From the IMG/VR virus record IMGVR_UViG_3300037116_000299, positions 124,001-188,000 of that record: a stretch of 64,000 bases of DNA; one strand, 5' to 3'. The notes beneath the pieces were generated by a model, which saw nothing but the letters and a program-made list of their open reading frames with translations, searched no databases and was not told where the DNA came from. Of the stretch, positions 1-24,915 are shown piece by piece. Positions within the stretch are counted from its first letter, which is position 1. Each line of letters begins with the position of its first letter. The position numbers were made by a program, and so were the translations under genes.

Positions 1-2793
1 GTCCATCAGCTCGTTGAGCATCCAGTTGGGGACGCCGTCACCTACGCTGATGGTCTTGCCGTCCTCGGACACCAGGGCCTCGGACTCCATCGAGTACACC
101 TTGTTGAGCCACTCGACTGCGATCGAGCGACGCACTTCAGGCGACCAGGCGCCGCCGCTGATGGAGAGCTTGACGCCCTCCCCTTCGGAGGTGAACTGGT
201 TGAGGTAGAAGTCCCTGAGACCGAGGTGATGCAGTGTGGTGCTGCTCACGATACGGCCTTCGGCATCCTTCACATCGATCGGCTCATCCCAGCCATTGGC
301 GATGTTGTCATACGCATCCTCAGACAGCTCGCCCGTGAGGGACTTGGCTGCTTCGAACTGCGCACGCCACCAGACGCGCAACGCTTTGACGACGTCGGTG
401 ATGACATCGCTGCCGGGATAGGCCATGAGCAGCTGCAGAGGCAGCGGCTTCTTGAAGCTGTGCTCGAGCTGACGGGATTCCTCCATGATTCCCTCATAGT
501 GGTCCTTCAGCTCTTCCAGAGCAGCGCAGACCTCGGTACGGACCAGCAGGTAGTTGCCTGCTTCGATCCGGTCCTTGGGTGCACGGCCCTGGCGGACGTA
601 GGATGCCGGGAAGATGAGAGTCTTCTCCGACAGCTTGGCCTCCTGGCACAGTTCGGTCACCATCTTCTTGTTGCCCTTACCCTGCTGCAGGTAGTCGATG
701 ACCATGTCCGAGTTGCTCGCTGCGCGCTTGCACAGGAAGGGCTGGCGCACCTTCATGAACGTGATGCACAGCTGGACGAAGTCCTCCACCTCCGGCTTGT
801 AGTCCACGGGGATGAATTCCCAGAACCACTCCGGGCTGTTGATCTTGACGTCTTCCAACGACATGGCATGGAAGCCCTTCGGCACGATGTATGTGCCGTT
901 GATGAGGGAGTCCAGGATCACGACCACGTTGTCGCCCGACAGCATGTTGTCGAGCGTGAGGCGGTTGATGAAGGTACCCAAGCTCTCACGATACTGCGTG
1001 AAGTGCTTGAGGTCCCGACGGAAGCAGTTCCAGTTCCACTCGTCCCCGATACCCTCATGGGTGAGGCGGTTACGTGCGGCCCAGTGGCTGTCCTTCTTCT
1101 CTTCAACCGAGATCTTCGGCTGCTTCGGATACTCCTGGATCTTGGCTGCAACTCGGAGGACATACACCGAGTTCCAGAAGACCCAGATCGAGTCATCCAT
1201 ATCACCACCGTTGAGATAGCTCAGCTGTTCAGCGATCCGTTCGAGCAGGAAGCAACGGCCTTGGCCCTTGTACTTCTTCAGCTCTGCCGGGATGTAGTTG
1301 AGGAATACTAATGCTTCTGCACTGCAGGCATTGGGATTACGACCTGCTGTCACCAACACACCGTCTGGTGCATCCGGCATGCAGTTGACGAAGACAGGAA
1401 TGCCCAAGCGATCCGAGCACATCTGAGCACGTGCCATGATGTGATCCGGAACCTTGGACAGGGTGAGATCCACGATGCGCTCATCGTCGACGAATACGGT
1501 CGGCGGTGGTGCGACGTAGACACGACGCGCCCACTCATGAGGCATGGGCACACGGCCCCGACGTAAGTCGAGGATGTTGTCGAACAGGTGACGAGTGACG
1601 CGACGGAAGCCCACAGGCATAGCCTTGGTTCCGATCCCGTCCTCCGCCATGCGCACCAGCGCCCAGCGGTTCTCGCTCTCATCGTTGCAGGAGTTGACGA
1701 ATGCACTGATCTCATCGAGCAGCTTGCCTTCGTCGCTGCCGAACAGGATAGCCGCCGCACGGTCCATATACTTGATACCAGTGGTGGCTGCCAAGCCCTT
1801 GGCACCCAGGCCCATGTTGCCCATGGTCTGGTTGTCGAGGGTGAGGTCATGCTCCTCAGCATCCGAGAGTGCACCCAGGAAGACGCGGTCATCCACGAAG
1901 CGAACCTCCTTCTTCGAACCGAAGAGATAGAGGTCGTAGCTGCGCATGTGCGGCATCTTCCAGTAAATGCCCTTGCCTTCGCCGAACTCGCCGACGAGGG
2001 TAAGCGCCTTGTTGAAGTACCCGGGGATGTTGGAGATACCCATCCCATCGATGGTGGCGGTTTCAGCTGCGTTGAAACGGGTCATGTCCGCATCGAGAAT
2101 GCGGATAACCCGGCCGTTGTCCAGCTCGATCTCGTAGGCGGTGCCTTCGGGAACGATCGTACGGTCAATGATGTGACCCCGCATCGAGGACTGATGCGGT
2201 GCCAGGAAGCGGCGCAACCGCTTGGCTGCCTTCGCGTCACTGGATACCCAGATACCCAGATCCTTGAAGCTGCGTGCCTTGCAGTTGTCGGATACGAAGA
2301 GAGCGGTGCCCTCATCGATCACGTTGCCGTAGATGGGGACGTAGCGAATGCCCGTCTGCTTGTCGGTCCAGCCGGAGCGCACCAGCGACCAGGCCTTGTT
2401 GGCCATGTGCTTGGTGGCGTTCTTGCCGGATGCTTCGAAGCTGACGAAGCCGTAGGTGACGCCTTCTGCCAGGAGGTCATCGAGAGCCTGACGGGTCTCG
2501 CTGTCATCGATGGCAGTCTTCGAGTCGAAGGATGCGCCTTCCTTGCGGATACGGCGCGTGATCTCCTTCAGGTTGACCTCACCCTCAGCACCGTGGGATA
2601 CGGCGCTCAGCACCAGCTGGAATGCCAGCTTGCTGGTGGGTTCGGTTGGGGTAACGGCTTCTGCGACTGCGACTGCGGCCGCTCCAAAGCTCTCTGAAGT
2701 GATCGGTGACGCTGCAACCACTTCGTTGACAACGATACGGGCGATGAAGCGACCAGTCTTGGGGTCACGAGCTGCTACGGTTCTCTGAGACAT
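1..2793 (-). CDS. Single-subunit two-barrel DNA-dependent RNA polymerase, YonO/cellular RdRP-like (non-virion RNAP candidate); 3'-partial, >=931 aa
   Basis: Translated by hand from ATG 2793 (RBS AAAGGAGA) through the catalytic region, and the same frame is open at base 1. Motifs in RdRP/YonO order: KRLRRFLAP, TIDGMGIS (D249), GEGKG (K274), GSKKE, LDNQT, GRVPMP, AGRNP (R485), LNGGDMDDSIWVFWN (D531/D533/D534; 1192-1209), LGTFIN, SDMVIDYLQQGKG. Confidence 0.85.
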   Translation of the reverse strand, partial: MSQRTVAARDPKTGRFIARIVVNEVVAASPITSESFGAAAVAVAEAVTPTEPTSKLAFQLVLSAVSHGAEGEVNLKEITRRIRKEGASFDSKTAIDDSETRQALDDLLAEGVTYGFVSFEASGKNATKHMANKAWSLVRSGWTDKQTGIRYVPIYGNVIDEGTALFVSDNCKARSFKDLGIWVSSDAKAAKRLRRFLAPHQSSMRGHIIDRTIVPEGTAYEIELDNGRVIRILDADMTRFNAAETATIDGMGISNIPGYFNKALTLVGEFGEGKGIYWKMPHMRSYDLYLFGSKKEVRFVDDRVFLGALSDAEEHDLTLDNQTMGNMGLGAKGLAATTGIKYMDRAAAILFGSDEGKLLDEISAFVNSCNDESENRWALVRMAEDGIGTKAMPVGFRRVTRHLFDNILDLRRGRVPMPHEWARRVYVAPPPTVFVDDERIVDLTLSKVPDHIMARAQMCSDRLGIPVFVNCMPDAPDGVLVTAGRNPNACSAEALVFLNYIPAELKKYKGQGRCFLLERIAEQLSYLNGGDMDDSIWVFWNSVYVLRVAAKIQEYPKQPKISVEEKKDSHWAARNRLTHEGIGDEWNWNCFRRDLKHFTQYRESLGTFINRLTLDNMLSGDNVVVILDSLINGTYIVPKGFHAMSLEDVKINSPEWFWEFIPVDYKPEVEDFVQLCITFMKVRQPFLCKRAASNSDMVIDYLQQGKGNKKMVTELCQEAKLSEKTLIFPASYVRQGRAPKDRIEAGNYLLVRTEVCAALEELKDHYEGIMEESRQLEHSFKKPLPLQLLMAYPGSDVITDVVKALRVWWRAQFEAAKSLTGELSEDAYDNIANGWDEPIDVKDAEGRIVSSTTLHHLGLRDFYLNQFTSEGEGVKLSISGGAWSPEVRRSIAVEWLNKVYSMESEALVSEDGKTISVGDGVPNWMLNELMD

Positions 2794-2891: not shown

Positions 2892-3074
2892 TTACCCCTG
2901 CCACGGGAAGTTGACATTGCTTACCCACGCCTCGTGGTCTTCCTTCTGCTTCTGAAGGCGTGCGGCGTATGCGACGTTCGACTCGACAGGCGTAGCTGGC
3001 TTATCGGCTGGGTACACATACAGAAGGAGTGCGCTAACGACGAGGAAACAAACGATGAAGAATGCGATCAACAT
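2892..3074 (-). CDS. Small membrane protein (60 aa, one N-terminal TM helix)
   Basis: Start placed at MLIAFF behind RBS AAAGGAGAAAGCACC; hydrophobic segment LIAFFIVCFLVVSALLLYVY. Confidence 0.7.
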   Translation of the reverse strand: MLIAFFIVCFLVVSALLLYVYPADKPATPVESNVAYAARLQKQKEDHEAWVSNVNFPWQG

Positions 3075-3161
3075 GGTGCTTTCTCCTTTCAAGAGAAAGC
3101 CCACAGTCATGAAGACCTGTGGGCAGTTAGAGTGAGGTTGACGAACAGACTGTTGGTCAGA

Positions 3162-3689
3162 CTACTTGGCGGACTGAGCGATCAATGCGATCAGGTCAGC
3201 CTTGGACATGTCGTTGAGCTGCGCTTCGAGGTTGGTCATCTCCACACCCGGGGTGCGGGCGATGGATGCTGCGGACGTGGCCTTGCCCCACTTGCTGAGC
3301 TTGCCGCTGATGCTCTCGCCGATGGATGCGGACTTCGACAGCATGTAGCCGGTGGCGTGGAGGGTGACTGGCACAGCCAGCACTTCCACTTTGCCGACGA
3401 CCGGAGCGGTCTTCTCTGCAGCGGTCTTGATGATGCTGCCTGTCCAGTTGATGAAGCGGTTGCTGACGCTGCCGCTGATGGCCTGGTCCAGGGTCTGCTT
3501 GGTGGCGATGGGTGCCACGACTGCTACTGTGGTTGCGGCAACCTGGGTGGTTGCCTGGGCGATTGCTGCTGCGATGATGGTCTGGAGCTGCTCTGCTGTC
3601 ATGGTCACGGTGTTCTCTTTGGTTGCCTTGGTGGACTTCTTGGAAGTTGAGTTGACGGTCGCGGTTGCTGCCTTGATGGAAACTGCCAT
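3162..3689 (-). CDS. Hypothetical Ala/Thr/Lys-rich protein (175 aa)
   Basis: Strong RBS AAAGGAGAACCACC-ATG, almost identical to that of the RNAP gene; phage-like codon usage. Confidence 0.75.
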   Translation of the reverse strand: MAVSIKAATATVNSTSKKSTKATKENTVTMTAEQLQTIIAAAIAQATTQVAATTVAVVAPIATKQTLDQAISGSVSNRFINWTGSIIKTAAEKTAPVVGKVEVLAVPVTLHATGYMLSKSASIGESISGKLSKWGKATSAASIARTPGVEMTNLEAQLNDMSKADLIALIAQSAK

Positions 3690-3932
3690 GGTGGTTCTCC
3701 TTTGTACGGGTTGGGGTTATTGATTAGGACCGGGTGGGCTCGAACCTAAGTCGAGGGTCACTCAGTACCACTGATTACCTGGTGTCTCTATCCCCAAACC
3801 TGTCCGCCCCTCGTGATGGCTCAAGGGACCTTTCCCACTCAGCGTGCGGTGAATACCCCACGTAATCGCCGCATGCCAGCCATCGCTCAAAAGCTGTCCA
3901 GGATGCAAACAGAAAAGGCCTCGCGTGTGGGC

Positions 3933-3962
3933 CTTTGGTAGTCGGGCGCCCTCCCTGACACT
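3933..3962 (+). promoter_or_regulatory. Class A putative phage promoter (CTTTGGTAG ... GACACT), probably leaderless
   Basis: Motif at 3933, NANNNT hexamer at +24, SD-less ATG at +36 (3969). Confidence 0.7.
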
Positions 3963-3968
3963 CGAGTT

Positions 3969-5520: not shown

Positions 5521-5550
5521 CTTTGGTAGTCCCCTGCCCTCTTCCATACT
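5521..5550 (+). promoter_or_regulatory. Class A putative phage promoter (CTTTGGTAG ... CATACT)
   Basis: Motif about 10 nt after the terminator; hexamer at +24. Confidence 0.7.
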
Positions 5551-5588
5551 CAGCACATCAGCCCAAACCGGGCGAGGAGATGAGAGCA

Positions 5589-12883: not shown

Positions 12884-13145
12884 GGCCGACACCCGCGACT
12901 TCTTCCTGCTGATGGGCTGCCAGTTCCTGAGCTACTTCATCTACAGTGTCAACGCCCGCGCCCTGGCGCAGGGCCGGATGGCGTGGACCTTCTTCACCGA
13001 CCTGATCTTCGCCGCCGCCAACTACACCATCATCAAGCAGGTCAGCGAGAACAAATCTGCCATGGGCCGCCTGGGTTACGTCCTGGGCGGGTCTTTCGGC
13101 TCAGTTCTGGCCATCCTGCTGACAAAGAAGCTGTTCGGCCAGTGA
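12843..13145 (+). CDS. Small multi-pass membrane protein (about 96-100 aa)
   Basis: Three hydrophobic segments, YVLGGSFGSVLAILL; start uncertain (12843 or 12855). Confidence 0.65.
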   Translation: MMFAMWNVWKRPSKADTRDFFLLMGCQFLSYFIYSVNARALAQGRMAWTFFTDLIFAAANYTIIKQVSENKSAMGRLGYVLGGSFGSVLAILLTKKLFGQ

Positions 13146-13155
13146 GCCGCAAAAT

Positions 13156-13165
13156 CCTATACTAG
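13156..13165 (+). promoter_or_regulatory. Class B putative late promoter CCTATACTAG
   Basis: Intergenic copy of a motif seen five times at operon starts. Confidence 0.65.
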
Positions 13166-13175
13166 GAAGGGTCGT

Positions 13176-13910
13176 ATGAGCACACCAGGGTTGATCCCCT
13201 CACCCGAAGACCTTTCTCCCTCCTGCACACCGGCACTTCCCGCCCCCAAAGTGAACATCAACAGCCTCATGGCTCGTGATGAGGACCTGGGGCTGACCAC
13301 GGAAGAGCAACAGGAGCTGGAAACCTACCAATCTGCCCTCATCATCCTCGGCCCCGCCGCCGGCGCCGTCCTCGTGTGTCCCGGCAACCAGGACAACGTG
13401 GCGGACGAGGACAAGTGTCCCTACTCGTCCAAGTGCCCCCTCCTGCGCGCCCGCAAGGCGCCCGCGGATCGACTCTGCCCGATCGAACGCAAGATCGTCG
13501 AAGAGCGCTTCGGGGCCTGGTGCCGGGAGATGGAAACCGAGCCCGATACCCTCAACGAGTCCAACCGCGTCGCCATCTCTGATCTCTGCTGGCTCGACCT
13601 GCAGGAGCAGCGCTGCCTGCACATCGTCGACAAGGGCGAGCAGGCCCGGCTCACCGTTACCAACCCGAAGGATGTGCACCCCGAGACCCTGTTGCCTATC
13701 TCGTGGGAGAAAGTCATCCATCCGAACGTCGAGCTTTTGGTACAGCTGCAGACGCAGCGCAGGATGATCTTGAAGGATTGGATGCTCACTCCGGAACAAC
13801 GCTGGAAGAAGGCGAAGGCGGAGAACAAGGGAACCGGGAAGGACCTGAGCAGCAAACAGTCCGCACGAGCGGACCTGCTGCGCAAGGGAACGGTTTCACC
13901 ACAAGTTTAG
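13176..13910 (+). CDS. Possible terminase small subunit with Cys cluster (244 aa)
   Basis: C-terminal VIHPNVELLVQLQTQRRMILKDWMLTPEQRWK resembles the P27-type TerS pattern (P......LTP..R); under a class B promoter. Confidence 0.4.
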   Translation: MSTPGLIPSPEDLSPSCTPALPAPKVNINSLMARDEDLGLTTEEQQELETYQSALIILGPAAGAVLVCPGNQDNVADEDKCPYSSKCPLLRARKAPADRLCPIERKIVEERFGAWCREMETEPDTLNESNRVAISDLCWLDLQEQRCLHIVDKGEQARLTVTNPKDVHPETLLPISWEKVIHPNVELLVQLQTQRRMILKDWMLTPEQRWKKAKAENKGTGKDLSSKQSARADLLRKGTVSPQV

Positions 13911-13994
13911 CGATACCCCACACGGAGAGAAGGTTGCTCCGAATACGGGCCGGGAGGGTTCACTCTCCCGGCTTAGTTCTCTTACGAGGTAGCA

Positions 13995-15374
13995 ATGTCG
14001 AAGCGCGAACGCGGCAGGCCAAGAGCAGGCGTCACCTACGAGCAGATTGCAGCGGAAGTGGCTGCAGGGCAGGATTTCAACCAGATCGCCATCAAGTTCA
14101 GCGTATCGCGCGACACTGTTGACCGGCGGATCAAAGAGCACACCGGAGGCAAGAAGGGCGTCAAGAGTGCCGCCCGCAAGGCTGCCACCAAGCGTGCCGC
14201 GGACAAGAAGGCCAAGGCCGCTCCGGTCAAGAGCCTCCATGCCCGCGCCATCCTGTCCGAGCGTTCGAAGAAGGCCGACTGGAGCGCGACGCCTGAAGAT
14301 TGCATCGCCGATCTCCGCTTGGTCCAGGAAAACCACTCCGACTCGTTCATCTCACGCAACTACTACCGCGTGCACGGCAAGTACAGCGACAGTACCTGGA
14401 ACTGTCATTTCGGCACGTTCGAGGAGTTCAAGCGGCGCGCTGGCCTGCAGCTCTCCCGCGGCCAGCATCACCTGGAGAAGAAGACCGCCCGCCACGCCGC
14501 CCTCGACGTCTATCGCCAGTTCTTCCTCGAAGAAGTGAAGCCCTGGGTCGGCAAGTACGAACTCAAGCAGACCGATGGCCGCATCAAGACCATGCTGATC
14601 GGCAGCGATCTGCATGATGTCGAGGCCGACCCGTTCGTCCTGTCTGTCTTCCTGGACACCGCCAAGCGCGTGCAGCCGGATGTGATCGTCCTCAATGGCG
14701 ACATGTACGACGAGTACGAGTTCTCCCGCTTCGACCAGGATCCGCGGCAGGTGAACATCCGGGCACGTTACGACTTCGTGCGCGAGCAGTTCTTCAAGCC
14801 CTTGCGCAGGATCTGCCCGAATACGCAGATCGATTTCATCATCGGTAACCACGAACAGCGCATTCTGAAGCTGCTCGCCGATCGCTCTCCCGCCATGAAG
14901 GTCCTCGTCGACCTGATGGGCGTCACCTTCTCGCAGCTGCTCGGGCTGGACGACTTCAGGATCAACCTGATCTGCAAGAGCGACTTCGCGGCGTACAACG
15001 CCAAGGAGATGCACGAAGAGGTCAAGCGCAACTACAAGAAGTATTACGAGACCGTGATCGTGAACCACTTCGGCGACGAAGGGTTCGCCATGTGCTCAGT
15101 CGGAGGCCACACCCACAAGCCCAAGCTCAGTTCGACGGTCAATGAAGTGATGGGCCCCATCTGGGCGCTCACCACCGGCGCGATGGCCAAGGTAGATGCG
15201 GAGTACGTCCCCGGCAAGACCAACTATCAGCAGTCGTTTGCCCTCGTTCACGTCGACACCTGGAGCCGCCAGGCGCTGCCCGAACACATCATGTTCACGT
15301 CACGCATGGCAGTTGTCGGCGGGAAGTTCTACTTCCGGCCCGAGCCGGAAGAAGAAGCGCAGCTCGCTGCGTAG
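13995..15374 (+). CDS. Calcineurin-like metallophosphoesterase with N-terminal HTH and a homing-endonuclease-associated-type repeat (459 aa)
   Basis: SDLHD, NGDMYD, GNHE, GHTH motifs; N-terminal HTH (FNQIAIKFSVSRDTVDRRIK); WSATPEDCIADL...YYRVHGKYSDSTWNCHFGTFEEFKRRAGL. Confidence 0.85.
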   Translation: MSKRERGRPRAGVTYEQIAAEVAAGQDFNQIAIKFSVSRDTVDRRIKEHTGGKKGVKSAARKAATKRAADKKAKAAPVKSLHARAILSERSKKADWSATPEDCIADLRLVQENHSDSFISRNYYRVHGKYSDSTWNCHFGTFEEFKRRAGLQLSRGQHHLEKKTARHAALDVYRQFFLEEVKPWVGKYELKQTDGRIKTMLIGSDLHDVEADPFVLSVFLDTAKRVQPDVIVLNGDMYDEYEFSRFDQDPRQVNIRARYDFVREQFFKPLRRICPNTQIDFIIGNHEQRILKLLADRSPAMKVLVDLMGVTFSQLLGLDDFRINLICKSDFAAYNAKEMHEEVKRNYKKYYETVIVNHFGDEGFAMCSVGGHTHKPKLSSTVNEVMGPIWALTTGAMAKVDAEYVPGKTNYQQSFALVHVDTWSRQALPEHIMFTSRMAVVGGKFYFRPEPEEEAQLAA

Positions 15375-15384
15375 GAGCCGTCCC

Positions 15385-15573
15385 ATGAACTCGTTCCGCG
15401 TCATCGAGGGTCAGATCGTCGAAGACATCTCCCCCTCCCAGGTACCACTCTTCCACCGCGCTGCATGGGAGATTGCTGAGAAACTCTGTACGAACGGAAA
15501 GGCCGACGTCACCAAGGTCTTCGACATCCTCGATTCGTACTTCCACATCCCGCCCGGCCAGCCTTCCCGTTAG
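15385..15573 (+). CDS. Hypothetical protein (62 aa)
   Basis: Start placed at MNSFRV behind TAGGAG. Confidence 0.65.
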   Translation: MNSFRVIEGQIVEDISPSQVPLFHRAAWEIAEKLCTNGKADVTKVFDILDSYFHIPPGQPSR

Positions 15574-15588
15574 CAGAAAGACAATCTG

Positions 15589-16023
15589 ATGCAGGCCATG
15601 AATATCTTCGTGGACGCAACCCAACAGCGCACCTTCAAAAGGCGCGCTGTTGCTGCGTTCCATAAGGACAAAGAGTATATGGAGGCTATCTTCGTCCGCC
15701 GGGGCGTTGGTGAGTTCCACGTCGTCAAGTTCATCAAGCTCAAGCTGCTCAAGCAGGGTCCCGAGATCGTCGACTCCGACGACGTCGAGTACCAGGCGCT
15801 GAAGAACGAGGCCAAGAACCTGGGGCTCGAGTTTGGCACCGTCCACACCCATCTCTACAACGACTCGGCTCCCTCGGAATGGGACCACAAAGAGAGCGTT
15901 GGCGAAGCCCTGGTTGGAGTCTGCTCCGTCTGGACCGACGAGAAGACGCAGAAGACCCACAGCCGTATCGACTTCTGGCAGCCTCAACTGCCCTGCAAGC
16001 TGAATGTTGTTCCCTCGAAATAG
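15589..16023 (+). CDS. JAB/MPN+ (JAMM) metalloprotease (144 aa)
   Basis: KEYMEAIF glutamate plus exact H-x-H-x7-S-x2-D motif (HTHLYNDSAPSEWD). Confidence 0.85.
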   Translation: MQAMNIFVDATQQRTFKRRAVAAFHKDKEYMEAIFVRRGVGEFHVVKFIKLKLLKQGPEIVDSDDVEYQALKNEAKNLGLEFGTVHTHLYNDSAPSEWDHKESVGEALVGVCSVWTDEKTQKTHSRIDFWQPQLPCKLNVVPSK

Positions 16024-16190
16024 GTGACCATGACCACATCCCCTCTGCGGACCTCTACCCAGGTCCGCCCCTCCCCTCTTGTCCGCGTCCCGACCAAGGT
16101 CATGAAGACCGGCGTCAGCAACTTTACCCCCGGGACGGCGACCTTCAGTCCCCGCGCCAGTGGCTCTCGCAAGCTCCGAGGGGTCTGATC

Positions 16191-16200
16191 CCTATACTAG
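16191..16200 (+). promoter_or_regulatory. Class B putative late promoter CCTATACTAG
   Basis: Directly before the first gene of the structural/packaging operon (AGGAG RBS, ATG 16222). Confidence 0.7.
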
Positions 16201-16221
16201 ATAGCTTTTAGGAGATCAATA

Positions 16222-16737
16222 ATGGTATCGATTCCAGCTAACAGAGCACTCAATATCCTCGACAGTGGGATGACGAAAGCCGCCTCCATGTGGAATTCGG
16301 CAGGCGCATCAAGGGCTGCAGGCATCGCCCGACAAGTTTCCAGTGGCATGCACCTGAAGAGTTCCGGGTTCGCTCTTGCAGCGGGCGCGGGCGCCGCGGC
16401 AGGTGGCGCGGCCGGTTACGCAGCCAGCGATGGCGATATGAGCGGAGCAGCCAAGGGCGCGGCCCTGGGTGTACTGGGCGTCGCCGGTTTCCGCGGCATC
16501 CAGTCTGCCCGTTCCAGCTATAACGGCGGCCTTCTTCGCGATGGCGTAAGTTCAGCCAAGAGCTGGGCTTCCGGAAAGTGGCAGAACGGCATGCTGCAGG
16601 CTCGTCTGGGCGCAATGGAATTGGAGCAGCGCAGCACCAGCGCCGCTGTGACGGCGGGGTCCGTAGGCAAACGGATGAGCAGCCGCGGTGCGGCAGAAGC
16701 CGATCGCGCGTTCTGGCGTGCCAATCCGAACGGGTAA
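16222..16737 (+). CDS. Gly/Ala-rich hydrophobic protein, possible virion-internal/ejection protein (171 aa)
   Basis: Glycine-zipper-like GFALAAGAGAAAGGAAGYA segment; late-operon position. Confidence 0.6.
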   Translation: MVSIPANRALNILDSGMTKAASMWNSAGASRAAGIARQVSSGMHLKSSGFALAAGAGAAAGGAAGYAASDGDMSGAAKGAALGVLGVAGFRGIQSARSSYNGGLLRDGVSSAKSWASGKWQNGMLQARLGAMELEQRSTSAAVTAGSVGKRMSSRGAAEADRAFWRANPNG

Positions 16738-16740
16738 ACC

Positions 16741-17466
16741 ATGACCGATCCCGTCTTTGCCGGCACCAAGGCAGCGCAGTTCCTGAAATCCAAGGGCATC
16801 TTCGTCGCCGCCGCGGCCGCCGGCGCCGGCGGCATCGCCATTGGAGCGGCACGCGGCAGCAGTCAGCATCAGGACGCTTCACCCACCACTCGCGCAGGCC
16901 TGGCGGCTCATCATGCGGTTGGCGCTGGCCTGATTCTGGCCGGAGTCGGAGCTGGAGTCTACGCCGCCAAGGGAACGCTTTGGAAGGGCGGCTACAAGGC
17001 CGCGACCGGTGCTGTCGAAGCGGGAGGCAAGTCCTTTACCGCAGCGACCCGGGAAACGGGGATAGCCAATACCTTTCTGAAACACCCCATCGTTCCTACC
17101 GCGATCGGTATGGGACTCGGCGGGCTCGTCGGGGCCCAGATGGACAAAGACAATCCCGCCGCGGGCGCCGCGATGGGGATGGTCGCAGGCGGAGCTGCAG
17201 GTCTGGCACTGCGTAGCGGCCGGAACATGGCCAAGAGCTGGAGCAAGACACCTCGGGTTGGCAAAGCAGCCTTGATTGCCGGCGCAGCGATCGGCGTTAC
17301 TGCAGCAGCGCACGCTTTCACCCACGAACAGTCTTATGCCGCTGATGACACCGCCGTAAGCGATGGCCGCGGCAGCTACGAGGCAACCGCGGGACCTCGA
17401 GAGCGGATGCAGTCGATGAATGCGACAGGATATCTGGTCTTCGGTCTCAACGCGCGTAGGCACTAA
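16741..17466 (+). CDS. Gly/Ala-rich multi-hydrophobic-helix protein, possible ejection protein (241 aa)
   Basis: Several glycine-zipper-like segments. Confidence 0.6.
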   Translation: MTDPVFAGTKAAQFLKSKGIFVAAAAAGAGGIAIGAARGSSQHQDASPTTRAGLAAHHAVGAGLILAGVGAGVYAAKGTLWKGGYKAATGAVEAGGKSFTAATRETGIANTFLKHPIVPTAIGMGLGGLVGAQMDKDNPAAGAAMGMVAGGAAGLALRSGRNMAKSWSKTPRVGKAALIAGAAIGVTAAAHAFTHEQSYAADDTAVSDGRGSYEATAGPRERMQSMNATGYLVFGLNARRH

Positions 17467-17990
17467 TGCTCCTGAACCAGGCATCCCGGGATGGACTCAA
17501 CGGAGCAGCGCAGTCGATGCGCATGGCTCCGTCGCGTGCGTTCTGGTCAGGCATGAAGCTGAGCGGTATCGGAATCGCCGCGGGCGTCCCGATGATCGCG
17601 TATGAAGCAGGGCATGCCCAGAGGGGCGAGGTTTTGCCCACCGCCCTGGGCCGCACCGTAGGCCTGATGACCTTCCCCGCGCTCAGCGGCGCGCTCGCCG
17701 CCGGCGGCGCGATGGCGGCCACCGCGCTAGGTCTCTCGGTCCCGGGCATTGGAGCCTTTGCCGTGTTGGCTTCGATCTACCCCGACGTGATGATCGGCAA
17801 TTCGATCAATCGCAGCATCCGGTCTCTCACCGCGGCCGGGCGCCAGGTTCACCACCTCGAGTTCGGTGGCAGCTTCCAGGACACCGACACCGCGCGCCAG
17901 ATGCGCAACTACGCCCTTTACGAGATGAGCGGAGCCACCTCCGCCTCCCGTCGTTACCTGGGACAGGAAGCTGCCCTGATGCACCGATAA
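17466..17990 (+). CDS. Gly/Ala-rich hydrophobic protein (174 aa)
   Basis: TAATG-coupled; long hydrophobic centre. Confidence 0.6.
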   Translation: MLLNQASRDGLNGAAQSMRMAPSRAFWSGMKLSGIGIAAGVPMIAYEAGHAQRGEVLPTALGRTVGLMTFPALSGALAAGGAMAATALGLSVPGIGAFAVLASIYPDVMIGNSINRSIRSLTAAGRQVHHLEFGGSFQDTDTARQMRNYALYEMSGATSASRRYLGQEAALMHR

Positions 17991-18079
17991 CAGTCTTCGA
18001 CTCGAAGAGCGGATTCATAGCGGTTTTCGACCGCCGATAACGCTTTTCGACCAAACCCTTCAAATTGGAGTTCCTACTC

Positions 18080-18496
18080 ATGGGCGACTACCTGGATTTC
18101 AAGCGCAACGTGCTCAATACCCCTCACCCGATGTTCGGGGCGATGCCTCCTGGCTTTGGCGTAGGCGACCTGCCTGCGCGGTATGACGACGGCTTCCTCG
18201 TGTTCAACGCTGTCACTGGCGACCAGACATCCGCAGCCATCCCTGTCGATGCCAACGCGATCGAGCTGGTGGCCACCTTCAGCGACCTGCACACCGGTTG
18301 CACGATCACGGTGTTGGCGGCCGACGGCGTGACTCCGCTGGCAGTCTTCCCCGGGGTAAGCACGCTCAAGAGCAGCAACCTCTATGCCGGCTTTGCCGAG
18401 AACAACCAGCTGCTCGGCGGAGGTTCGTTTCTCTTCGCCGTATCCGCATGGTCTGGCACGGGAACCCTGACGTTGAAGGTTCGCCGCACCGGCTAA
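18080..18496 (+). CDS. Beta-rich hypothetical protein, possibly structural (138 aa)
   Basis: Start placed at MGDYLD behind GGAG. Confidence 0.65.
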   Translation: MGDYLDFKRNVLNTPHPMFGAMPPGFGVGDLPARYDDGFLVFNAVTGDQTSAAIPVDANAIELVATFSDLHTGCTITVLAADGVTPLAVFPGVSTLKSSNLYAGFAENNQLLGGGSFLFAVSAWSGTGTLTLKVRRTG

Positions 18497-18509
18497 TACA
18501 GGACAACTT

Positions 18510-20636
18510 GTGAGCACTGGATTCGTTCCGTTGGCCGATCTTGTGGCCGGTCTTCCTGAGGAAGATCGGTCCTTTCTCGCCAACGCCATCAAACGCGATC
18601 AGAAAGAACACGCCGAGGGCAGCGACAAAGCTGGCATCATTCGGCGGATGCAGTGCGCCCAGTGCCAGAACTGCCAGGAGCACTACCGCACCAAGCATCC
18701 AGGCAAGCCCTTCGTCATCAAGTGCTTTGGCGTCTACGACACCCCTGACTATGAGGCGGCGAAGGTGCGCATGCACGCCGACGGCGAGGAGATGTCGATC
18801 GACGAGATCCGGGAGATCTATGACCCCGCGTTCTGGGGCTCACGCCACATCGTCGTCAAGAATGACGACGGCGACATCGTCTCTTTCATCCCCCGTTTCT
18901 ACCAGGAAGAAGCTCTGCGCTGCACCTCGCCACGCAAGATCGACCGTTGGGGCCGCGGCCTGGGCAAGACCATGAGCGGCGTGGTGGAGGAGATGCACTT
19001 CCTCTGCAACAACAAGAACACCCAGACCCTGGTGCTCTGTCCATCGGCCGCGCAAGCTCAGTTGTGGTGGGATGAGATCAACTTCCAGGTCGAGAACTCG
19101 CCGACCCGTGAGTTCGAGATCTTGCAGAAGAAACAGCAGCCGTACGCCATGATCCGCTTCGGCAATGGCTCGGTCCTGACCATCTTCACCGCCGGATCGA
19201 AGTCCGGTAAGGGCGCTGACTCCATTCGATCGCAATCCCCGCGCCGCATCCGGCTCGAGGAGCAGGACTTTCTCGCCGACAAGGATTACCAGGCGATCAT
19301 GCCGCTGTTGCGGCGCTTCAAGAACGTCACCTTCCACGGTTCCTCGACGCCGACCGGCAAGCGCGAGATGTACTGGCAGATGTGCAACAAGCTGGCCGAG
19401 TACCAGGAGTTCTTCCACCCGGTCATGGATCACCCGGACTGGGGCAGTGAAACTCTCAATGAAGAGGCCTGCTTGGCCGAAGCCAAGACCATGGACCGCT
19501 ATCGCCATGAGTGGCTGGCCGAGTTCGGCGATCCCGAGGCCGGGCTCTTCAAGAGCGCCTTCGTCGACGCGGCGATGATGCCGTTCACCATGCGGTCTTC
19601 GATGTACTCCCCGGACAAGAACCATGTGATGGGCATCGACTGGAACGGCAAAGGCACCGGCACCCGCATCGTGGTCACCCAGTACGATCCTTCGACCCGC
19701 AAGCGGAGAGTGGTGCATCACGAGACCATCGACGACCCCAAGTCGACGACCCGCAAGTCCATGGCCCGCATCGTCGAGATCAACAAGATGTGGCACTGCG
19801 ACTACGTGTACGTGGACGCGGGGTTCGGCTTTGTCCAGGACGAGTTGATCAAGGAGATCGGCGTCGCCGCCGGCACCTTCGACCCTGACACCGCCAAGCT
19901 GAAGTACATCAAGGTCATCGACTTCGGCGCCAAGCTCGAAACCAACGCCATCGTCCCCAACCGGGACCCCAATTCCAAGTACCTGGCCGATCCGAAGGAC
20001 GACATTCTGAAGCGCCGCACCAAACCCTTCATGGTTGAAGGCATGGTCATGGCCTTCGAAGCCGGCCTGGTCGAGATCTCGCGCGAGTACAACACCCTCG
20101 AAGAGCAGCTCCGCGGCTACCGGGTCAAGACCTGGACCAAGGGCGGCGCAGCCGACACCTACATCACCGACTCCGAATCTGGCGACCATGACCTCGACGC
20201 CTGCATGCTGTCGATGCTGGGGATCGAGCTGAACTACGGCCTCTGGCACACCAAAGAATCCATCCGGCGTTTGGTACAGATCGCGCACGTGTCAGGCTGG
20301 GGACTGCCGGCAACTGTGGTCAATACCCAGCCGGCGGCAGCGGACGATCCAGAACAGAGTCCAGCCGCGCGGATTGAGCAAAACCGGCAACTCCGCCGTC
20401 AGGCGTCCGGGGTTCCTTCCCGCGTTACTGCTGCCCAGACGGGAACATCGCTGCAGGAGAAATACCGGCTGATGTACCTCTCCAAGGGCAGCTACATTGC
20501 CGCCCCCACCGGAGGCGGCGCTGCCAGTTCCAACGGACGCGTACCCTCCCGGACCGGAGTCTTCCAGGGAGCCTCGCGGGGAGGTTCGCAGTACGGCAAC
20601 CCGCAGACTTCCCGGACTCGATTCAGGAGCTACTAA
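18510..20636 (+). CDS. terL: Terminase large subunit (708 aa)
   Basis: Q motif RFYQEEAL, Walker A WGRGLGKT, Walker B RIRLEEQD, motif III SSTPTG, RNaseH-like nuclease MGIDW...YVDAGFG...DHDLDA. Confidence 0.92.
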   Translation: MSTGFVPLADLVAGLPEEDRSFLANAIKRDQKEHAEGSDKAGIIRRMQCAQCQNCQEHYRTKHPGKPFVIKCFGVYDTPDYEAAKVRMHADGEEMSIDEIREIYDPAFWGSRHIVVKNDDGDIVSFIPRFYQEEALRCTSPRKIDRWGRGLGKTMSGVVEEMHFLCNNKNTQTLVLCPSAAQAQLWWDEINFQVENSPTREFEILQKKQQPYAMIRFGNGSVLTIFTAGSKSGKGADSIRSQSPRRIRLEEQDFLADKDYQAIMPLLRRFKNVTFHGSSTPTGKREMYWQMCNKLAEYQEFFHPVMDHPDWGSETLNEEACLAEAKTMDRYRHEWLAEFGDPEAGLFKSAFVDAAMMPFTMRSSMYSPDKNHVMGIDWNGKGTGTRIVVTQYDPSTRKRRVVHHETIDDPKSTTRKSMARIVEINKMWHCDYVYVDAGFGFVQDELIKEIGVAAGTFDPDTAKLKYIKVIDFGAKLETNAIVPNRDPNSKYLADPKDDILKRRTKPFMVEGMVMAFEAGLVEISREYNTLEEQLRGYRVKTWTKGGAADTYITDSESGDHDLDACMLSMLGIELNYGLWHTKESIRRLVQIAHVSGWGLPATVVNTQPAAADDPEQSPAARIEQNRQLRRQASGVPSRVTAAQTGTSLQEKYRLMYLSKGSYIAAPTGGGAASSNGRVPSRTGVFQGASRGGSQYGNPQTSRTRFRSY

Positions 20637-21056
20637 ATGGCGAACGGCGATACCCAGAACAACATTGCCGCGGACACCGCAGCGAGTTACGACAAGCCGA
20701 TCGCCGTGTCGGTCATCAACAAGCTGGAGAAGTTCCCGTTCATGCAGGAGCTGGCCTACAACGGCATCCTGGAATTCCTGAAGCAGGGCTTCCTCGGCCT
20801 GCAGGACTTCTTTGAGGAGATGACGGTGTACTCGAGCGTCAGCACCCTGCTCAAGGCCGCCTGGAGTCTGATCGTGCATCGCGCGCCTCTCAACCTCGAT
20901 GTGGAGCGGAATCTCTACACCACTGAATCCCTGGGAACGGTCGGTCTGGCCTTCCAGAGGATGATCGGCTACGACCAGGTCTTCGCCGTGGATCCTGACG
21001 ACCTGCAGGACGCGACCGGGTCTTCAGTCGTTTCCGCCAACCTCCCGAGCGCCTAA
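20637..21056 (+). CDS. Hypothetical protein (139 aa)
   Basis: Abuts terL; coupled to the next gene. Confidence 0.7.
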   Translation: MANGDTQNNIAADTAASYDKPIAVSVINKLEKFPFMQELAYNGILEFLKQGFLGLQDFFEEMTVYSSVSTLLKAAWSLIVHRAPLNLDVERNLYTTESLGTVGLAFQRMIGYDQVFAVDPDDLQDATGSSVVSANLPSA

Positions 21057-22672
21057 TGTCCTTCGATTCGATCAAGTTCGCGTACACCCCGCCGCCTACC
21101 GTTCCCGCGACGATCCCAGTCAATTCTGTTCAGCAACCCGGTCTGTTCATGAACCCCGGACAGACGAATTCGCTGAACACGTCAGTGGCAGGACAGTTGA
21201 TCGCCAGAGCCAAGGAGCTGCTCAATGCCAATCGGTACCTTCAGGATGTGATCCTGGCGCGCAGCCAGGGATTGGGCGTGGAGTTCGATCCCGCCGTCGA
21301 CCCCAGCACGGCGCAGTCGCTGGAGATTCTCTACCCGAACCAGATCGTCCCGACTTCGCTGACCGTCAACATGTACGGCCGGATGCTGGACGCAGAACTG
21401 GCCGCGCTGCAGATCGACACCGCGCTTGGCACCAACAGCGCCTGTGAAGTCAACGCCTTCCAGGCGGCGGCTGTGAGCCAGGTGGCTCAGGCAATTGAGA
21501 ACGGCTTGCTCAACAGCGGCAAGTTCCAGTACCAGCTGCCCCTGCTGCTCCGTCAACTCAAGGGAGATACCGCCCTCTTCAACACCGTAGCGACCGAACT
21601 GGCCAGGTACCCCGTGCTGGCGGCGCCGGCGGCGTCGCTCACGAGCGGCAAGCCGAGCTTGATCTCGGTGCGCGGCCAGGACGTGTCGCCTGCCCTGTCG
21701 TCCATCATGAACGACGCGTTTGACTCATTCCAGAGTTCCTACGCTTCGGTCTATCAGCTGGCGGCAACGACGGGTGTCATCGACCAGGACGTCAACAACG
21801 TCCTGAACCAATACTTCATCGAGCCGGCCGCGAACCTGATTCGTATGACGGCTCTGTTCGACTCGCTGATCGGGTTTGCCCATCTCCCGCGGTTGAAGTC
21901 AGTGGTCAACGGGCTCACCGGCTACGCCTTCATGATGCTGATCGCCGAGGCCTCCACGATGGAGTTCATGGCCGATCGGTTCATTCAGACCGCAATCATG
22001 CCGCTCCGCCAGATCACCAGCAACATAGGCGACATGGTCAAGCAGGTACAACTTGCAACTGCCCTGGTGGGTCAGGCTGCCGGCGGCGTCAAGCAGGCCT
22101 ACAACCACACCACCGGCGGTCTGAAGGGAATGTCCTTCGGCTACAGTTGCGGACTCCCGCACAACGCGGCGGCTCAGAAGCCGGCCGTTCCGGAAAGCGT
22201 TTGGTCCGTTCCTGGCGTTGGCAAGATGTCCCAGGGCCTGACCGCCCTGGCCACCCATCTCGACTGGGCACAACACGAAGGCATGAAGAAAGCCAGCCTG
22301 GTCCAGGAGTCGTTTCAGAAGCTCCTGCAGCGCCGTGTTGGCGACATGAACACCCAGCTGGACCTGATGTGTAGTACCCAGGCTTTGAACACGCTCACCC
22401 AGCTCGCGCGATCCGTCCTCTCTTTCACCGGATCCGCGGCGCCCGTGGGCGGCACCCAGACCATCAGTCAGATGCAGGCCGTCACCCAGATCATGAACGG
22501 CATGCAGTCCGCCACCGGATCCTCTTATGTTGTCGTGAACAGCCAGATGCAGGCCGTTCCTCCTTCCGTTCCCGCGCCACCGAGCAGCGTCCAGACCACT
22601 CTGGTCAACGGAGGCCTGACCCTCGTCGCCACTTCGGCGGCCGTCAAGGCACCCACCCTTGGAGCAAGCTAA
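21056..22672 (+). CDS. Hypothetical, probably virion protein (538 aa)
   Basis: Long coupled ORF between terL and the portal. Confidence 0.7.
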   Translation: MSFDSIKFAYTPPPTVPATIPVNSVQQPGLFMNPGQTNSLNTSVAGQLIARAKELLNANRYLQDVILARSQGLGVEFDPAVDPSTAQSLEILYPNQIVPTSLTVNMYGRMLDAELAALQIDTALGTNSACEVNAFQAAAVSQVAQAIENGLLNSGKFQYQLPLLLRQLKGDTALFNTVATELARYPVLAAPAASLTSGKPSLISVRGQDVSPALSSIMNDAFDSFQSSYASVYQLAATTGVIDQDVNNVLNQYFIEPAANLIRMTALFDSLIGFAHLPRLKSVVNGLTGYAFMMLIAEASTMEFMADRFIQTAIMPLRQITSNIGDMVKQVQLATALVGQAAGGVKQAYNHTTGGLKGMSFGYSCGLPHNAAAQKPAVPESVWSVPGVGKMSQGLTALATHLDWAQHEGMKKASLVQESFQKLLQRRVGDMNTQLDLMCSTQALNTLTQLARSVLSFTGSAAPVGGTQTISQMQAVTQIMNGMQSATGSSYVVVNSQMQAVPPSVPAPPSSVQTTLVNGGLTLVATSAAVKAPTLGAS

Positions 22673-24915
22673 TGCCCAGCAAGACCGCTAACCAGATGAA
22701 AGCAGACCGTCTTCAGATCCAGGAAACGTATCGGCTCACCCGCCTCATGGCATTCACGGACGGCACGCTGAAGAGCGCGTCGAAGCCGATCGCGATGCGG
22801 AGGACGGTTGCCGGCAAGCAGATGGAGCCCAACATCAAAGGGCTCGGCGATCGTACCGCTTCGTACACCGGCGGAACCTTCCAGCCGCGGGAGATCCCGA
22901 CCGGAGCACGCCACGTCACCGATGCCCAGATGCGCGCCTGGAAGACGACCGTCGACAGCGGGATGAAGATCGCCGATGCCGGGAAGATCATCAACCCGGA
23001 CATCACCCGGATCAAGCAGGCCAAGGCGGCCGACTACATCGGCACCTATTACATGTGGAATGGGGTCCTGCAGCCGGAATACGACATGCGCGAACCGCAT
23101 GCCATCGTGGACACCGAAGTCTATGTAAAGCAGATGGTCCACCGGAAGCTGGCGCTCGCCGCCCGCGCCGGCTACGAGATCATGAGCGACCGGGATGAGG
23201 ACGCTGAGTACATCCAGCACCGCATCGACGTCATGGAGTTTGTCTCGGAGCGCAGTTTCCCCAGCCTGCTCAAGGGCATTCTGTACAACCTCTTCACCTG
23301 CTCCAACTGCTTTGTTCACAAGCTGCGCAAGGAAGATGCGTCCCCGGTTCCCCGCAAGAAGGGGATGCCGGCGCCGGTCGCCGCCTATTCGATCATCCCG
23401 GCCCACACCATCCAGCCCTACCTCGAGCATGGCCGGATCGTGAAGTGGCGTCGCTTCTTCGACTCCGCCGTTCCGTGGCAGGACATCCCGGTCGAAGACA
23501 TCATCCACTTCAAGTGGTCCTCCGATCTCAAGGCTGGCCACATCTATGCCACCCCGCGCACGATCGCCGTCCGCGACGACATCTTTGCGCTCCGCCGCTT
23601 GGAAGAGAACGTCGAACTGCTGTTCATCAACCACTTGTTCCCGTTGTTCCACGTTCAAGTGGGCACCGCGGAAGCGCCTTGCACCTACGGCGACAACGGC
23701 GAGTCTGAGATCGACCTGGTCCGCTGGCAGATCGAGAACATGCCGAAGGAAGGCGTCTATGTCTCGGACGAGCGCGTCAAGATCAGCGCCGTCGGCGCCG
23801 AAGGCAAGTCCCTCGACTTCTCCCCACTGGTAACGCACTACAAGAGCCGCGTCTATGTCGGGCTGGGCATGAGCGCCATCGACATGGGCGAAGGCGCGGA
23901 CGCAACGCGCGCCACCGCCGACAACATCTCGCAGAACCTCAAGGATTCGATCAAGGCCGATCTCGATGACCTGGCCGATCAGATCCGGATGTTCATGTTC
24001 CGCGACTGGTTCATGGAGGCGAACTACTCGACCTCCGTGCAGAAGGGCGTGGCCCGCACCTTCATCCGGTTCCACGAACTGGATCTCGACAACCGGATCA
24101 AGGAAGAGACCCACGTCCTGGCTCTCTTCAACTCCCACCTCATCACCGAGGATGAAGCCCGCAAGCGCCTGAAGTACAAGGCGATGACTCCGAAGGATCG
24201 GGGCAACACCCACTTCAGCCTGCATGTGGTGAAGCTTGAGAAGGAGATTACCAAGTTCAAGACTGCCTCGACCCTCGAAATCAACGCCGCCAATGTCGAC
24301 AACGAAAAGAAGATGGCAGGCACCCAGATCAAGCTGATGGAGGCGCAGGCCAAACTCTCCGAGACCAAGACCGGTCACGAGGAGCAGAGTCTCGCCGCCC
24401 AGGCCAAGCATCTGCCTGTCATCGCCAAGGCCAAGGTAGCGGTGGCGAATGCTACCGCGCGCAAGGGCGCCGCCGGCGCGCCGCGCCGCTCAACCGCCAA
24501 GAAGACGACGCAGACCGCGGCCGCCGTCTCGAATAAGATGCGCCCGACCAACCAGCACGGCAGCGGCCTGGGGCCGACCAAGGCTAAGTCCAGCCGTGAA
24601 TCCTTCATGGGCGAGTTGTACGAAGGCTTGCTGCTGGCGCGCGAGGACATGATCAGCGATGGACAGTCCGCGCCGAAACAGTGGCAGTCGGTCAGTTCGG
24701 AAGTGGTAGATCAGGTCCTGGACCGTATGGAGAAAGCTGAAATCACCGGTTCGGGTGGTGATTCCTATACTAGACAGGTGAGAGATGGACTTAGCCGATT
24801 GAAGGCCATGATCGCTGAGACCTCTGACCCTGAACTTCTCTCTGTCCTCCTTCGGGAAGGCATCGAGGAAGAGGTAGTAGACGATGTCGAACTTCACGAC
24901 GCACTTGCCAGTTAG
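22672..24915 (+). CDS. Portal protein with long Lys/Ala-rich C-terminal extension (747 aa)
   Basis: Position between terL and protease; DIIHFKW, YATPRTIAVRDDIFALRR, LFPLFHVQVG, RVYVGLGMSAIDMG...RATAD portal-like motifs. Confidence 0.8.
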   Translation: MPSKTANQMKADRLQIQETYRLTRLMAFTDGTLKSASKPIAMRRTVAGKQMEPNIKGLGDRTASYTGGTFQPREIPTGARHVTDAQMRAWKTTVDSGMKIADAGKIINPDITRIKQAKAADYIGTYYMWNGVLQPEYDMREPHAIVDTEVYVKQMVHRKLALAARAGYEIMSDRDEDAEYIQHRIDVMEFVSERSFPSLLKGILYNLFTCSNCFVHKLRKEDASPVPRKKGMPAPVAAYSIIPAHTIQPYLEHGRIVKWRRFFDSAVPWQDIPVEDIIHFKWSSDLKAGHIYATPRTIAVRDDIFALRRLEENVELLFINHLFPLFHVQVGTAEAPCTYGDNGESEIDLVRWQIENMPKEGVYVSDERVKISAVGAEGKSLDFSPLVTHYKSRVYVGLGMSAIDMGEGADATRATADNISQNLKDSIKADLDDLADQIRMFMFRDWFMEANYSTSVQKGVARTFIRFHELDLDNRIKEETHVLALFNSHLITEDEARKRLKYKAMTPKDRGNTHFSLHVVKLEKEITKFKTASTLEINAANVDNEKKMAGTQIKLMEAQAKLSETKTGHEEQSLAAQAKHLPVIAKAKVAVANATARKGAAGAPRRSTAKKTTQTAAAVSNKMRPTNQHGSGLGPTKAKSSRESFMGELYEGLLLAREDMISDGQSAPKQWQSVSSEVVDQVLDRMEKAEITGSGGDSYTRQVRDGLSRLKAMIAETSDPELLSVLLREGIEEEVVDDVELHDALAS
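24764..24773 (+). promoter_or_regulatory. Class B putative late promoter CCTATACTAG
   Basis: Inside the portal 3' end, upstream of the head-assembly genes; context TTCCTATACTAGACAG matches the 42258 copy. Confidence 0.55.

Follow-up and report, generated by a model that had tools for sequence, protein, structure and literature searches.

The 64,000-nt stretch analyzed here (the window) covers positions 124,001 to 188,000 of the IMG/VR virus record IMGVR_UViG_3300037116_000299 and belongs to a tailed phage with terminase, portal and sheath genes. On the minus strand, positions 1-2793 translate as 931 codons without a stop and run off the left edge of the window, which is why a mechanical ORF list omits this frame. 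The full product (hereafter P0001) is 1032 aa, the last 101 codons lying beyond the edge. An AAAGGAG ribosome-binding site is found at 2800-2806, 6 nt before the ATG at 2793-2791. Immediately upstream and co-oriented is a 72-aa ORF (2892-3110, minus strand), which is a called gene in the loci L001/L002, followed further upstream by a 175-aa ORF (3162-3689, minus strand) with a near-identical ribosome-binding site, the latter being the first gene of this arm after the strand switch. A divergent intergenic region (3690-3968) separates the minus-strand arm from the opposite, plus-strand arm. This region showed no Rfam hit and no unusual fold, and a tRNA-like stretch (GGTTCGAGCCCACC) in the 280-nt leader upstream of the arm gave no ARAGORN hit, no Rfam hit and a folding z-score of -0.2. 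In all five loci examined, at 20-42% protein identity, the polymerase gene sits just after a divergent strand switch and heads a run of small ORFans.

To explore whether the open frame is a real gene, we searched for it in other assemblies. The same protein is encoded on at least 9 contigs from independent samples, and an 80-nt stretch around its putative metal-binding loop is base-identical in five other assemblies. Moreover, a strain variant (L005) differs at 68 of 3096 nt, with 55 synonymous and 12 non-synonymous codon changes, and its loop is unchanged apart from a synonymous GGT->GGC. These results show that the gene is under purifying selection and is more than a chance ORF. The first-pass annotation had described an RNA polymerase related to YonO and cellular RdRPs whose DxDGD loop has lost its Gly, and all the motifs on which it relied are present in order: DGMGIS at residue 249, GEGKG at 271, SKK at 293, RNP at 485, GGDMDD at 529, LGTFIN at 605 and VIDYLQQGKG at 698. 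The loop reads LNGGDMDDSIWVFWN, with GGDMDD (G529-G530-D531-M532-D533-D534) at 1192-1209 and D531/D533/D534 at 1192-1203, all on the minus strand. A 3-nt sequencing or assembly deletion at the loop is refuted by the identical DNA in five assemblies from different samples and pipelines, by the diverged strain that keeps the loop, and by the presence of the loop in all 62 relatives examined and in the further loci L011-L016.

P0001 itself is not recognized by sequence in Pfam, PHROGs, NCBIfam or the PDB, nor by tblastn against 50,697 GenBank phages, and tblastn with two divergent members of its family also gave nothing. An exhaustive HMMER search of 1.84 billion proteins, however, found 86 metagenomic representatives. 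Among these, all 62 near-full-length sequences, which are only 19-40% identical to P0001, carry G-[GA]-D-x-D-D. D531, D533, D534 and P487 are invariant (62/62), and R485 is present in 61 of 62. The R485-N-P487 motif (1333-1341, minus strand) is the R-x-P of the second, beta-prime-like double-psi barrel, which is listed as universal (PMC2919709), and it aligns to the R-x-P of QDE-1 and YonO. In the first, beta-like barrel, D249-G250 (2044-2049, minus strand; D in 54/58, G in 58/58), K274 of GxGKG (1972-1974, minus strand; 59/59) and K294 (1912-1914, minus strand; 56/59) are conserved in the order and region expected for the barrel-1 Asp and two basic residues of two-barrel polymerases (Rpb2 D837, K979, K987). 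D249 is a candidate equivalent of QDE-1 D709 (Mg-B, water-mediated; PMC9508822), which rests on spacing and on a sub-threshold HMMER stretch (DGm..GlgKG vs QDE-1 DGI..GSAKG), and the equivalence of K274 and K294 to QDE-1 K743 and K767 is likewise inferred.

The family profile hits QDE-1 as its only significant sequence match in the PDB (E=1.5e-4). P0001 has no hit to Pfam RdRP (PF05183) even at E<=10, but its relatives P0054 (40.8 bits) and P0036 (25.0 bits) exceed the cut-off of 23.8 bits, so the link to this Pfam family is transitive. BLASTP against YonO finds nothing, and hhalign against the YonO family gives E=3.9e-4 but only 35% probability, over 188 columns that include R-x-P and the triad. 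The protein is thus no closer to YonO than to eukaryotic-type RdRPs. An AlphaFold2 model built on the 62-sequence alignment has pLDDT 91.2 and pTM 0.87, and all 23 PDB matches at E<=1e-3 in a Foldseek search are single-subunit two-barrel RNA polymerases, whereas matches in BFVD are phage 'RdRP' or uncharacterized proteins. These results, although barrel topology was not inspected in the coordinates, support a predicted two-barrel fold.

It is worth noting that the three Asp are kept while their spacing is not. HMMER aligns D531/D533/D534 to QDE-1 D1007/D1009/D1011 with the Gly of QDE-1 as a one-residue insertion (GGDmD.D vs GGDYDgD), and hhalign against the YonO family introduces the gap in the same register, in agreement with the clean Gly deletion proposed in the first-pass annotation. 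Its anchor x-phi-phi-V-x-W, by contrast, fits QDE-1 (MAWVCW) but not YonO (KALIIS), and the two Trp of P0001 are not conserved in its own family. An ungapped alignment of GGDMDDS with GGDYDGD, in which the canonical third Asp has been lost and D534 occupies the Gly position, is formally possible. It is nevertheless very unlikely, because both flanks are in register only with a one-residue gap: family members have GG-DxDD, six residues, then DP, and QDE-1 has GG-DYDGD, six residues, then DP. Furthermore, position 535 is unconstrained (S/N/A/T/Q...) whereas D534 is invariant, so D534 is inferred to be the selected ligand, and in the model strand 535-539 starts right after D534, as the strand of QDE-1 starts after its third Asp.

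Two enriched, strand-biased upstream motifs are found in the window. Motif A, CTTTGGTA(G/C)-N15-CA(T/C)(A/G)CT, is exemplified at 5521-5553, with other sites starting at 3933 (within the divergent intergenic region and pointing right), 7696, 8901, 10279, 11648, 30218 and 33066, all on the plus strand. It is conserved at orthologous sites in the relatives L011-L015, but neither motif showed convincing recurrence in the distant relatives L008, L009 and L010, and only the 41-42% relatives share motif A. Motif A has a sigma-70-like layout and may belong to the host enzyme. Motif B, TCCTATACTAGA(C/T)AG, is exemplified at 42256-42271, with other sites at 13154, 16189, 24762 and 39993, all on the plus strand within or next to the structural module (5 sites found vs 0.11 expected). 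A consensus scan for a host-type promoter of the polymerase arm found nothing above background. A third element on that arm, (A/T)CACCCT, shows 11 sites on the plus strand vs 1 on the minus, and 6 of the 11 fall in the 20% of the arm that is intergenic, but this remains a weak lead.

Taken together, the gene most likely encodes a catalytically competent single-subunit two-barrel (double-psi beta-barrel) RNA polymerase of the QDE-1 / YonO / phage non-virion RNAP kind (with a probability of roughly 0.75 for this reading as a whole), belonging to a deep, unnamed phage family that is metagenome-only apart from two Acidobacteriaceae bins; a search of GTDB genomes with subclade A4 found nothing. In the proposed active site, barrel 1 (about residues 200-310) supplies D249 and K274/K294, and barrel 2 (about 420-540) supplies R485-x-P487 and the triad, which sits between helix 520-526 and strand 535-539. 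Because the residue between the second and third Asp is missing, Mg-A is inferred to be held by two adjacent Asp, as in the DD of palm-polymerase motif C. The proposed role is that of the non-virion, DNA-dependent RNA polymerase of a roughly 255-kb tailed phage, probably of Acidobacteriaceae, made early from the arm of small ORFan genes that it heads and then transcribing genes on the opposite arm, with motif B promoters in the structural region as the best candidates. Activity, DNA template use, timing and promoter class are inferred here, without biochemical data for any member and without expression data.

A catalytically dead homolog kept for a structural, DNA-binding or regulatory role could also be considered, because DxDD spacing is unprecedented in this superfamily. 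This seems very unlikely. Dead enzymes lose their catalytic residues, whereas here all three Asp and the R-x-P Pro are invariant, both Lys, R485 and the barrel-1 Asp are held in 87-100% of the 62 sequences, and the gene is under purifying selection. It is also possible, though unlikely, that the protein is an RNA-dependent or dual-template polymerase, or that it makes short RNAs (replication primers, dsRNA or a regulatory RNA), and is not the general transcriptase of the phage. The best sequence and fold matches are indeed RdRPs (QDE-1, RDR2 and Pfam RdRP), QDE-1 has both activities (PMC9508822), and the polymerase arm has unusually long non-coding gaps of 590, 334 and 519 nt. However, all characterized phage members of this superfamily are DNA-dependent transcriptases (YonO, gp64/gp62, gp66 and gp96), the element is a dsDNA tailed phage, and the conserved position of the gene at the head of an early-looking arm fits a transcription switch.

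A 1649-aa ORF in the structural module (55630-60579, plus strand) carries R1137-H-P and, 36 aa on, G-D1173-T-D-G-D-R-M-S-A-H, and is an unproven candidate for a second, perhaps virion, polymerase. This motif-based lead was neither supported nor refuted by Pfam (including searches of segments), PHROGs, the PDB (whole protein and motif segment), hhalign against both polymerase families, GenBank phages or two degenerate-pattern scans of IMG/VR, and a single-sequence AlphaFold model was unusable (pLDDT 34.5). A more speculative and rather unlikely scenario is a two-polymerase cascade, in which this protein would transcribe the early arm, including the DxDD enzyme, which would then transcribe late genes from motif B promoters. 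In this scenario the DxDD loop would be a functional re-engineering of the Mg-A site with altered catalytic properties, such as metal preference, fidelity, NTP/dNTP discrimination or insensitivity to factors that target canonical loops.

In the papers we read, the D-x-D-x-D loop is described as universally conserved, from bacterial, archaeal and eukaryotic RNA polymerases to RNAi RdRPs, YonO and crAss-like phage enzymes, and no described two-barrel polymerase has adjacent second and third Asp. The loop is also the motif scanned for when hunting new polymerases, and P23-45 gp96 and crAss gp66 were found that way. A deep family that keeps all three carboxylates but drops the spacer residue means that such scans have a blind spot, and suggests that the Mg-A site tolerates a different backbone geometry. 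The family also adds a polymerase-encoding lineage of large soil phages, probably infecting Acidobacteriaceae, for which there are no cultured representatives.

Among known systems, QDE-1 of Neurospora crassa / Thielavia and plant RDR2 (eukaryotic cellular RdRPs, PF05183; PDB 2J7N, 5FSW, 7Y7P-T, 7EU0/1, 7W82) are the best fold matches, over about 900-1000 aligned columns (E from 2e-13 to 3e-8). They share with the predicted structure a single chain with two double-psi barrels, R-x-P, GG before the triad and a hydrophobic strand then D-P after it, together with a barrel-1 Asp plus basic residues whose equivalence is inferred. However, identity is only 10-13%, the loop is DxDD and not DYDGD, the context is a bacteriophage and not RNA silencing, and the N-terminal region (1-240) and the C-terminal beta-rich domain (835-1010) have no demonstrated counterpart. 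YonO of Bacillus prophage SPbeta, a DNA-dependent RNAP that transcribes late genes, is a phage-encoded single-chain two-barrel enzyme of similar size (839 vs 1032 aa), and by eye the YonO-family invariants IG..xN and IDY..K recur in order as L605-G606..N610 and I699-D700-Y701. YonO nevertheless has DNDGD, and its homologs number in the thousands, mostly in Firmicutes genomes. The P23-45 gp64 / P74-26 gp62 non-virion RNAP (PDB 8F5M) gives a significant fold match (E=5.8e-6) and acts in a cascade in which an early-made, DNA-dependent phage polymerase transcribes later classes, but it is much smaller (about 590 aa), has a canonical DxDxD loop and shows no detected sequence similarity. Finally, the DNA-dependent virion RNAP gp66 of the crAss-like phage phi14:2 (PDB 6VR4) has a two-barrel, QDE-1-like catalytic core and gives a significant but weak fold match (E=1.7e-4); it is, however, a 2180-aa virion-packaged protein with a DFDxD loop, whereas the gene studied here lies outside the structural module.

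The reverse complement of window 1-2793 is an uninterrupted frame of 931 codons that runs off the left edge, which is why it is absent from the mechanical ORF list, and the complete product is 1032 aa (hereafter P0001). The polymerase motifs listed in the first-pass annotation are all present and in place, with DGMGIS at residue 249, GEGKG at 271, SKK at 293, RNP at 485, GGDMDD at 529, LGTFIN at 605 and VIDYLQQGKG at 698, and the loop codons occupy window 1192-1209. The ATG at 2793-2791 follows an AAAGGAG ribosome-binding site, and the 175-aa gene upstream has a near-identical one. To explore whether the shortened loop could be an artefact of a 3-nt deletion in the assembly, we searched for other copies of the gene. 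The same protein is encoded on at least nine contigs, including two Logan runs and a 254,873-bp JGI contig, and on three IMG/VR contigs, and an 80-nt stretch around the loop is base-identical in five other assemblies. Moreover, a natural variant (locus L005) differs at 68 of 3096 nt, with 55 synonymous and 12 non-synonymous codon changes, and its loop shows a synonymous GGT->GGC change with unchanged residues. The assembly-deletion explanation is thus refuted, and the gene is under purifying selection.

The window belongs to a tailed phage. A PHROGs search identified a terminase (18510-20636), a portal (22672-24915) and a tail sheath (43031-44878), and a weak capsid hit was also found. Contigs carrying the gene reach 255 kb, so this is a jumbo phage; its GC content is about 60% and no tRNAs were detected. 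Within the ORF at 34188-34790, three tandem 39-nt repeats (34302-34418, plus strand) read in frame as a Gly-X-Y (collagen-like) repeat, as seen in some phage fibre proteins. A 1676-aa ORF downstream of the tail sheath (49371-54401, plus strand) has no Pfam, PHROGs or PDB match and contains no D.D.D or D.DD motif; it is possibly a tape-measure or baseplate protein.

P0001 alone hits nothing in Pfam, PHROGs, NCBIfam, PDB or GenBank phages. An exhaustive phmmer search of 1.84 billion representatives, however, found 86 relatives, 46 of them at E<=1e-10. Ten members spanning the family were looked up, and all are metagenomic and carry either no name or the name "hypothetical protein". The 62 members of at least 560 aa, which are 19-40% identical to P0001, were aligned (alignment A1). 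In this alignment P487, D531, D533 and D534 are invariant (62/62), whereas D249 is found in 54/58, G250 in 58/58, K274 and G275 in 59/59 each, K294 in 56/59, R485 in 61/62 and G529 in 61/62; position 535, immediately after the third Asp, is free (S, N, A, T, Q and others). This is the inventory given by Ruprich-Robert and Thuriaux for all two-barrel RNAPs (PMC2919709), namely one Asp and two Lys in the beta-like barrel, for which D249, K274 and K294 are the candidate equivalents, and R-x-P plus three Asp in the beta-prime-like barrel. One family member, P0009 (locus L010, 10001-13303), carries an N-terminal phage zinc-finger DNA-binding domain (PF24623, E=1.5e-6) fused to the polymerase, which hints that the variable N-termini of the family bind DNA.

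Three further links tie the family to known polymerases. First, the A1 profile hits QDE-1 chains and nothing else meaningful in the PDB (E from 1.5e-4 to 2.6e-4), and HMMER writes the loop as GGDmD.D against GGDYDgD, so the Gly of QDE-1 is a one-residue insertion. Second, two family members pass the curated Pfam RdRP threshold of 23.8 bits on their own, P0054 at 40.8 bits and P0036 at 25.0 bits. Third, hhalign of A1 against a 20-sequence YonO alignment (A2) gives E=3.9e-4, although at only 35% probability, with R-x-P and the triad in register and the same one-residue gap, whereas direct BLASTP against YonO finds nothing.

Both flanks fix the register of the loop. Family members read GG-DxDD, six residues, then D-P, and QDE-1 reads GG-DYDGD, six residues, then D-P; the family is therefore exactly one residue shorter between the first Asp and the D-P. 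Because D534 is invariant while position 535 is unconstrained, D534 is the selected third carboxylate. The ungapped alternative, in which Gly has changed to Asp and the third Asp has been lost, is unlikely, and either way the loop is non-canonical. The anchor D-S-I-W-V-F-W, on which the first-pass annotation had based the Gly deletion, is partly fortuitous, since W537 and W540 are not conserved in the family and YonO has KALIIS after its triad; the conclusion nevertheless holds on the profile alignments.

An AlphaFold2 model built on A1 has a mean pLDDT of 91.2 and a pTM of 0.87, and only residues 1-45 are disordered. A Foldseek search of the PDB with this model returned 23 matches at E<=1e-3, all of them single-subunit two-barrel RNA polymerases. 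QDE-1, Arabidopsis RDR2 and maize RDR2 matched at E from 2.3e-13 to 3.2e-8 over 820-1060 aligned columns (TM about 0.4), P74-26 gp62 at E=5.8e-6 and crAss-like phi14:2 gp66 at E=1.7e-4, whereas bacterial beta-prime appears only at E=5.6e-3. Against BFVD, the best matches are uncharacterised Caudovirales proteins and one annotated "RNA dependent RNA polymerase". In the predicted structure the triad loop lies between helix 520-526 and strand 535-539, R485-P487 follows strand 480-484, and D249, K274 and K294 lie within the first strand-rich block (202-311), which is consistent with two barrels.

The motif has been described as "universally conserved DxDGD" (PMC7598289) or as DxDxD, and as DFDxD in crAss-like phages. 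None of the papers examined contains DxDD, although absence from the library searched is not proof of absence. The finding is real, and the reading of the first-pass annotation, a YonO/RdRP-like RNA polymerase with a shortened catalytic loop, is supported as far as computation can go, with activity, DNA dependence and altered Mg-A loop geometry still inferred. The kind of enzyme is already known; what is new is a family that constitutes a clade-wide exception to a motif regarded as invariant.

To explore the likely role of the enzyme, we examined five loci (L002, L008, L009, L010 and L015) with polymerases 20-42% identical to P0001. In each of them the gene lies a few small genes after a divergent strand switch and heads a long run of small ORFans, and in four of the five a Cpn10-containing arm runs the other way. 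That is the layout of an early arm. The 280-nt leader upstream of the polymerase arm (window 3690-3935, minus strand) contains GGTTCGAGCCCACC, which resembles a tRNA T-arm; however, ARAGORN and Rfam find nothing there, and folding is no better than that of shuffled sequences. In L002, which extends beyond the left edge of the window, the arm downstream of the polymerase gene (13100-23099, plus strand) has long non-coding gaps (590, 334, 206 and 519 nt). A recurring GTTT..(A/T)CACCCT element occurs in it 11 times on the plus strand versus once on the minus, and 6 of the 11 fall in the 20% of the arm that is intergenic; it may be a third promoter class or a leader element.

Two motifs are enriched and point away from the polymerase arm. 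Motif A, CTTTGGTA(G/C)-N15-CA(T/C)(A/G)CT, has six exact core matches plus 1-mismatch sites (16 in all versus 6.6 expected), and eight sites, at window 3933, 5521, 7696, 8901, 10279, 11648, 30218 and 33066 on the plus strand, show the bipartite layout, often just after a hairpin and 30-70 nt before a start codon. It is conserved at orthologous intergenic positions, with a free spacer, in relatives whose polymerase is only 41-42% identical (loci L011-L015), so it is functional. Its layout (TTGgtA-16-cAtacT) looks like a sigma-70-type promoter, perhaps of the host, possibly Acidobacteriaceae, or of a phage factor. Motif B, TCCTATACTAGA(C/T)AG, has 5 sites versus 0.11 expected, at window 13154, 16189, 24762, 39993 and 42256, all on the plus strand. 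It is a single tight block 6-50 nt upstream of genes in or beside the structural module, and twice it follows the hairpin AATCACCGGT..GGTGATT. This is more like a phage-polymerase promoter, and motif B is a candidate late promoter. Neither motif occurs in the polymerase's own direction. By analogy with YonO, which transcribes late genes, and P23-45 gp64, which transcribes early and middle genes, we propose, as an inference, that the enzyme is made early and transcribes a later class, with motif B as the best candidate.

A clue to the host comes from two GTDB bins that carry 38-42% identical homologs with the same GGDMDD loop, an uncultured Acidobacteriaceae MAG (L015; CAWENG010000004.1, where the locus lies 65-78 kb from the end of a 3.26-Mb contig) and a Terracidiphilus MAG (L016). 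The former also has the same synteny, with a Cpn10 gene on the opposite arm, and GC content matches (57-59%), although the phage there may be integrated, mis-binned or mis-joined. Other family members come from loci of 38-56% GC, so the family spans several hosts.

The phage may also encode a second, possibly virion, RNA polymerase. The 1649-aa ORF at 55630-60579 (plus strand), which lies downstream of the sheath and of the 1676-aa ORF, contains R1137-H-P and, 36 residues later, G-D-T-D-G-D-R-M-S-A-H (D1173). This is a beta-prime-like R-x-P / DxDGDxMxxH signature, as bacterial beta-prime appears to have R-A-P followed, after about 35 residues, by N-A-D-F-D-G-D-Q-M-A-V-H. In 20,000 shuffles of the 5,152 residues scanned, D.DGD alone arose in 6.9% of shuffles and D.DGD.M..H in 0.005%, whereas the version with R.P upstream never arose; the pattern was, however, chosen after the match had been seen. 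No library, profile or structure test supports or refutes this reading, the single-sequence AlphaFold model was unusable, and only near-identical copies exist in IMG/VR. If the second polymerase is real, the phage would have a canonical-loop virion-module polymerase plus the DxDD non-virion enzyme, as in P23-45.
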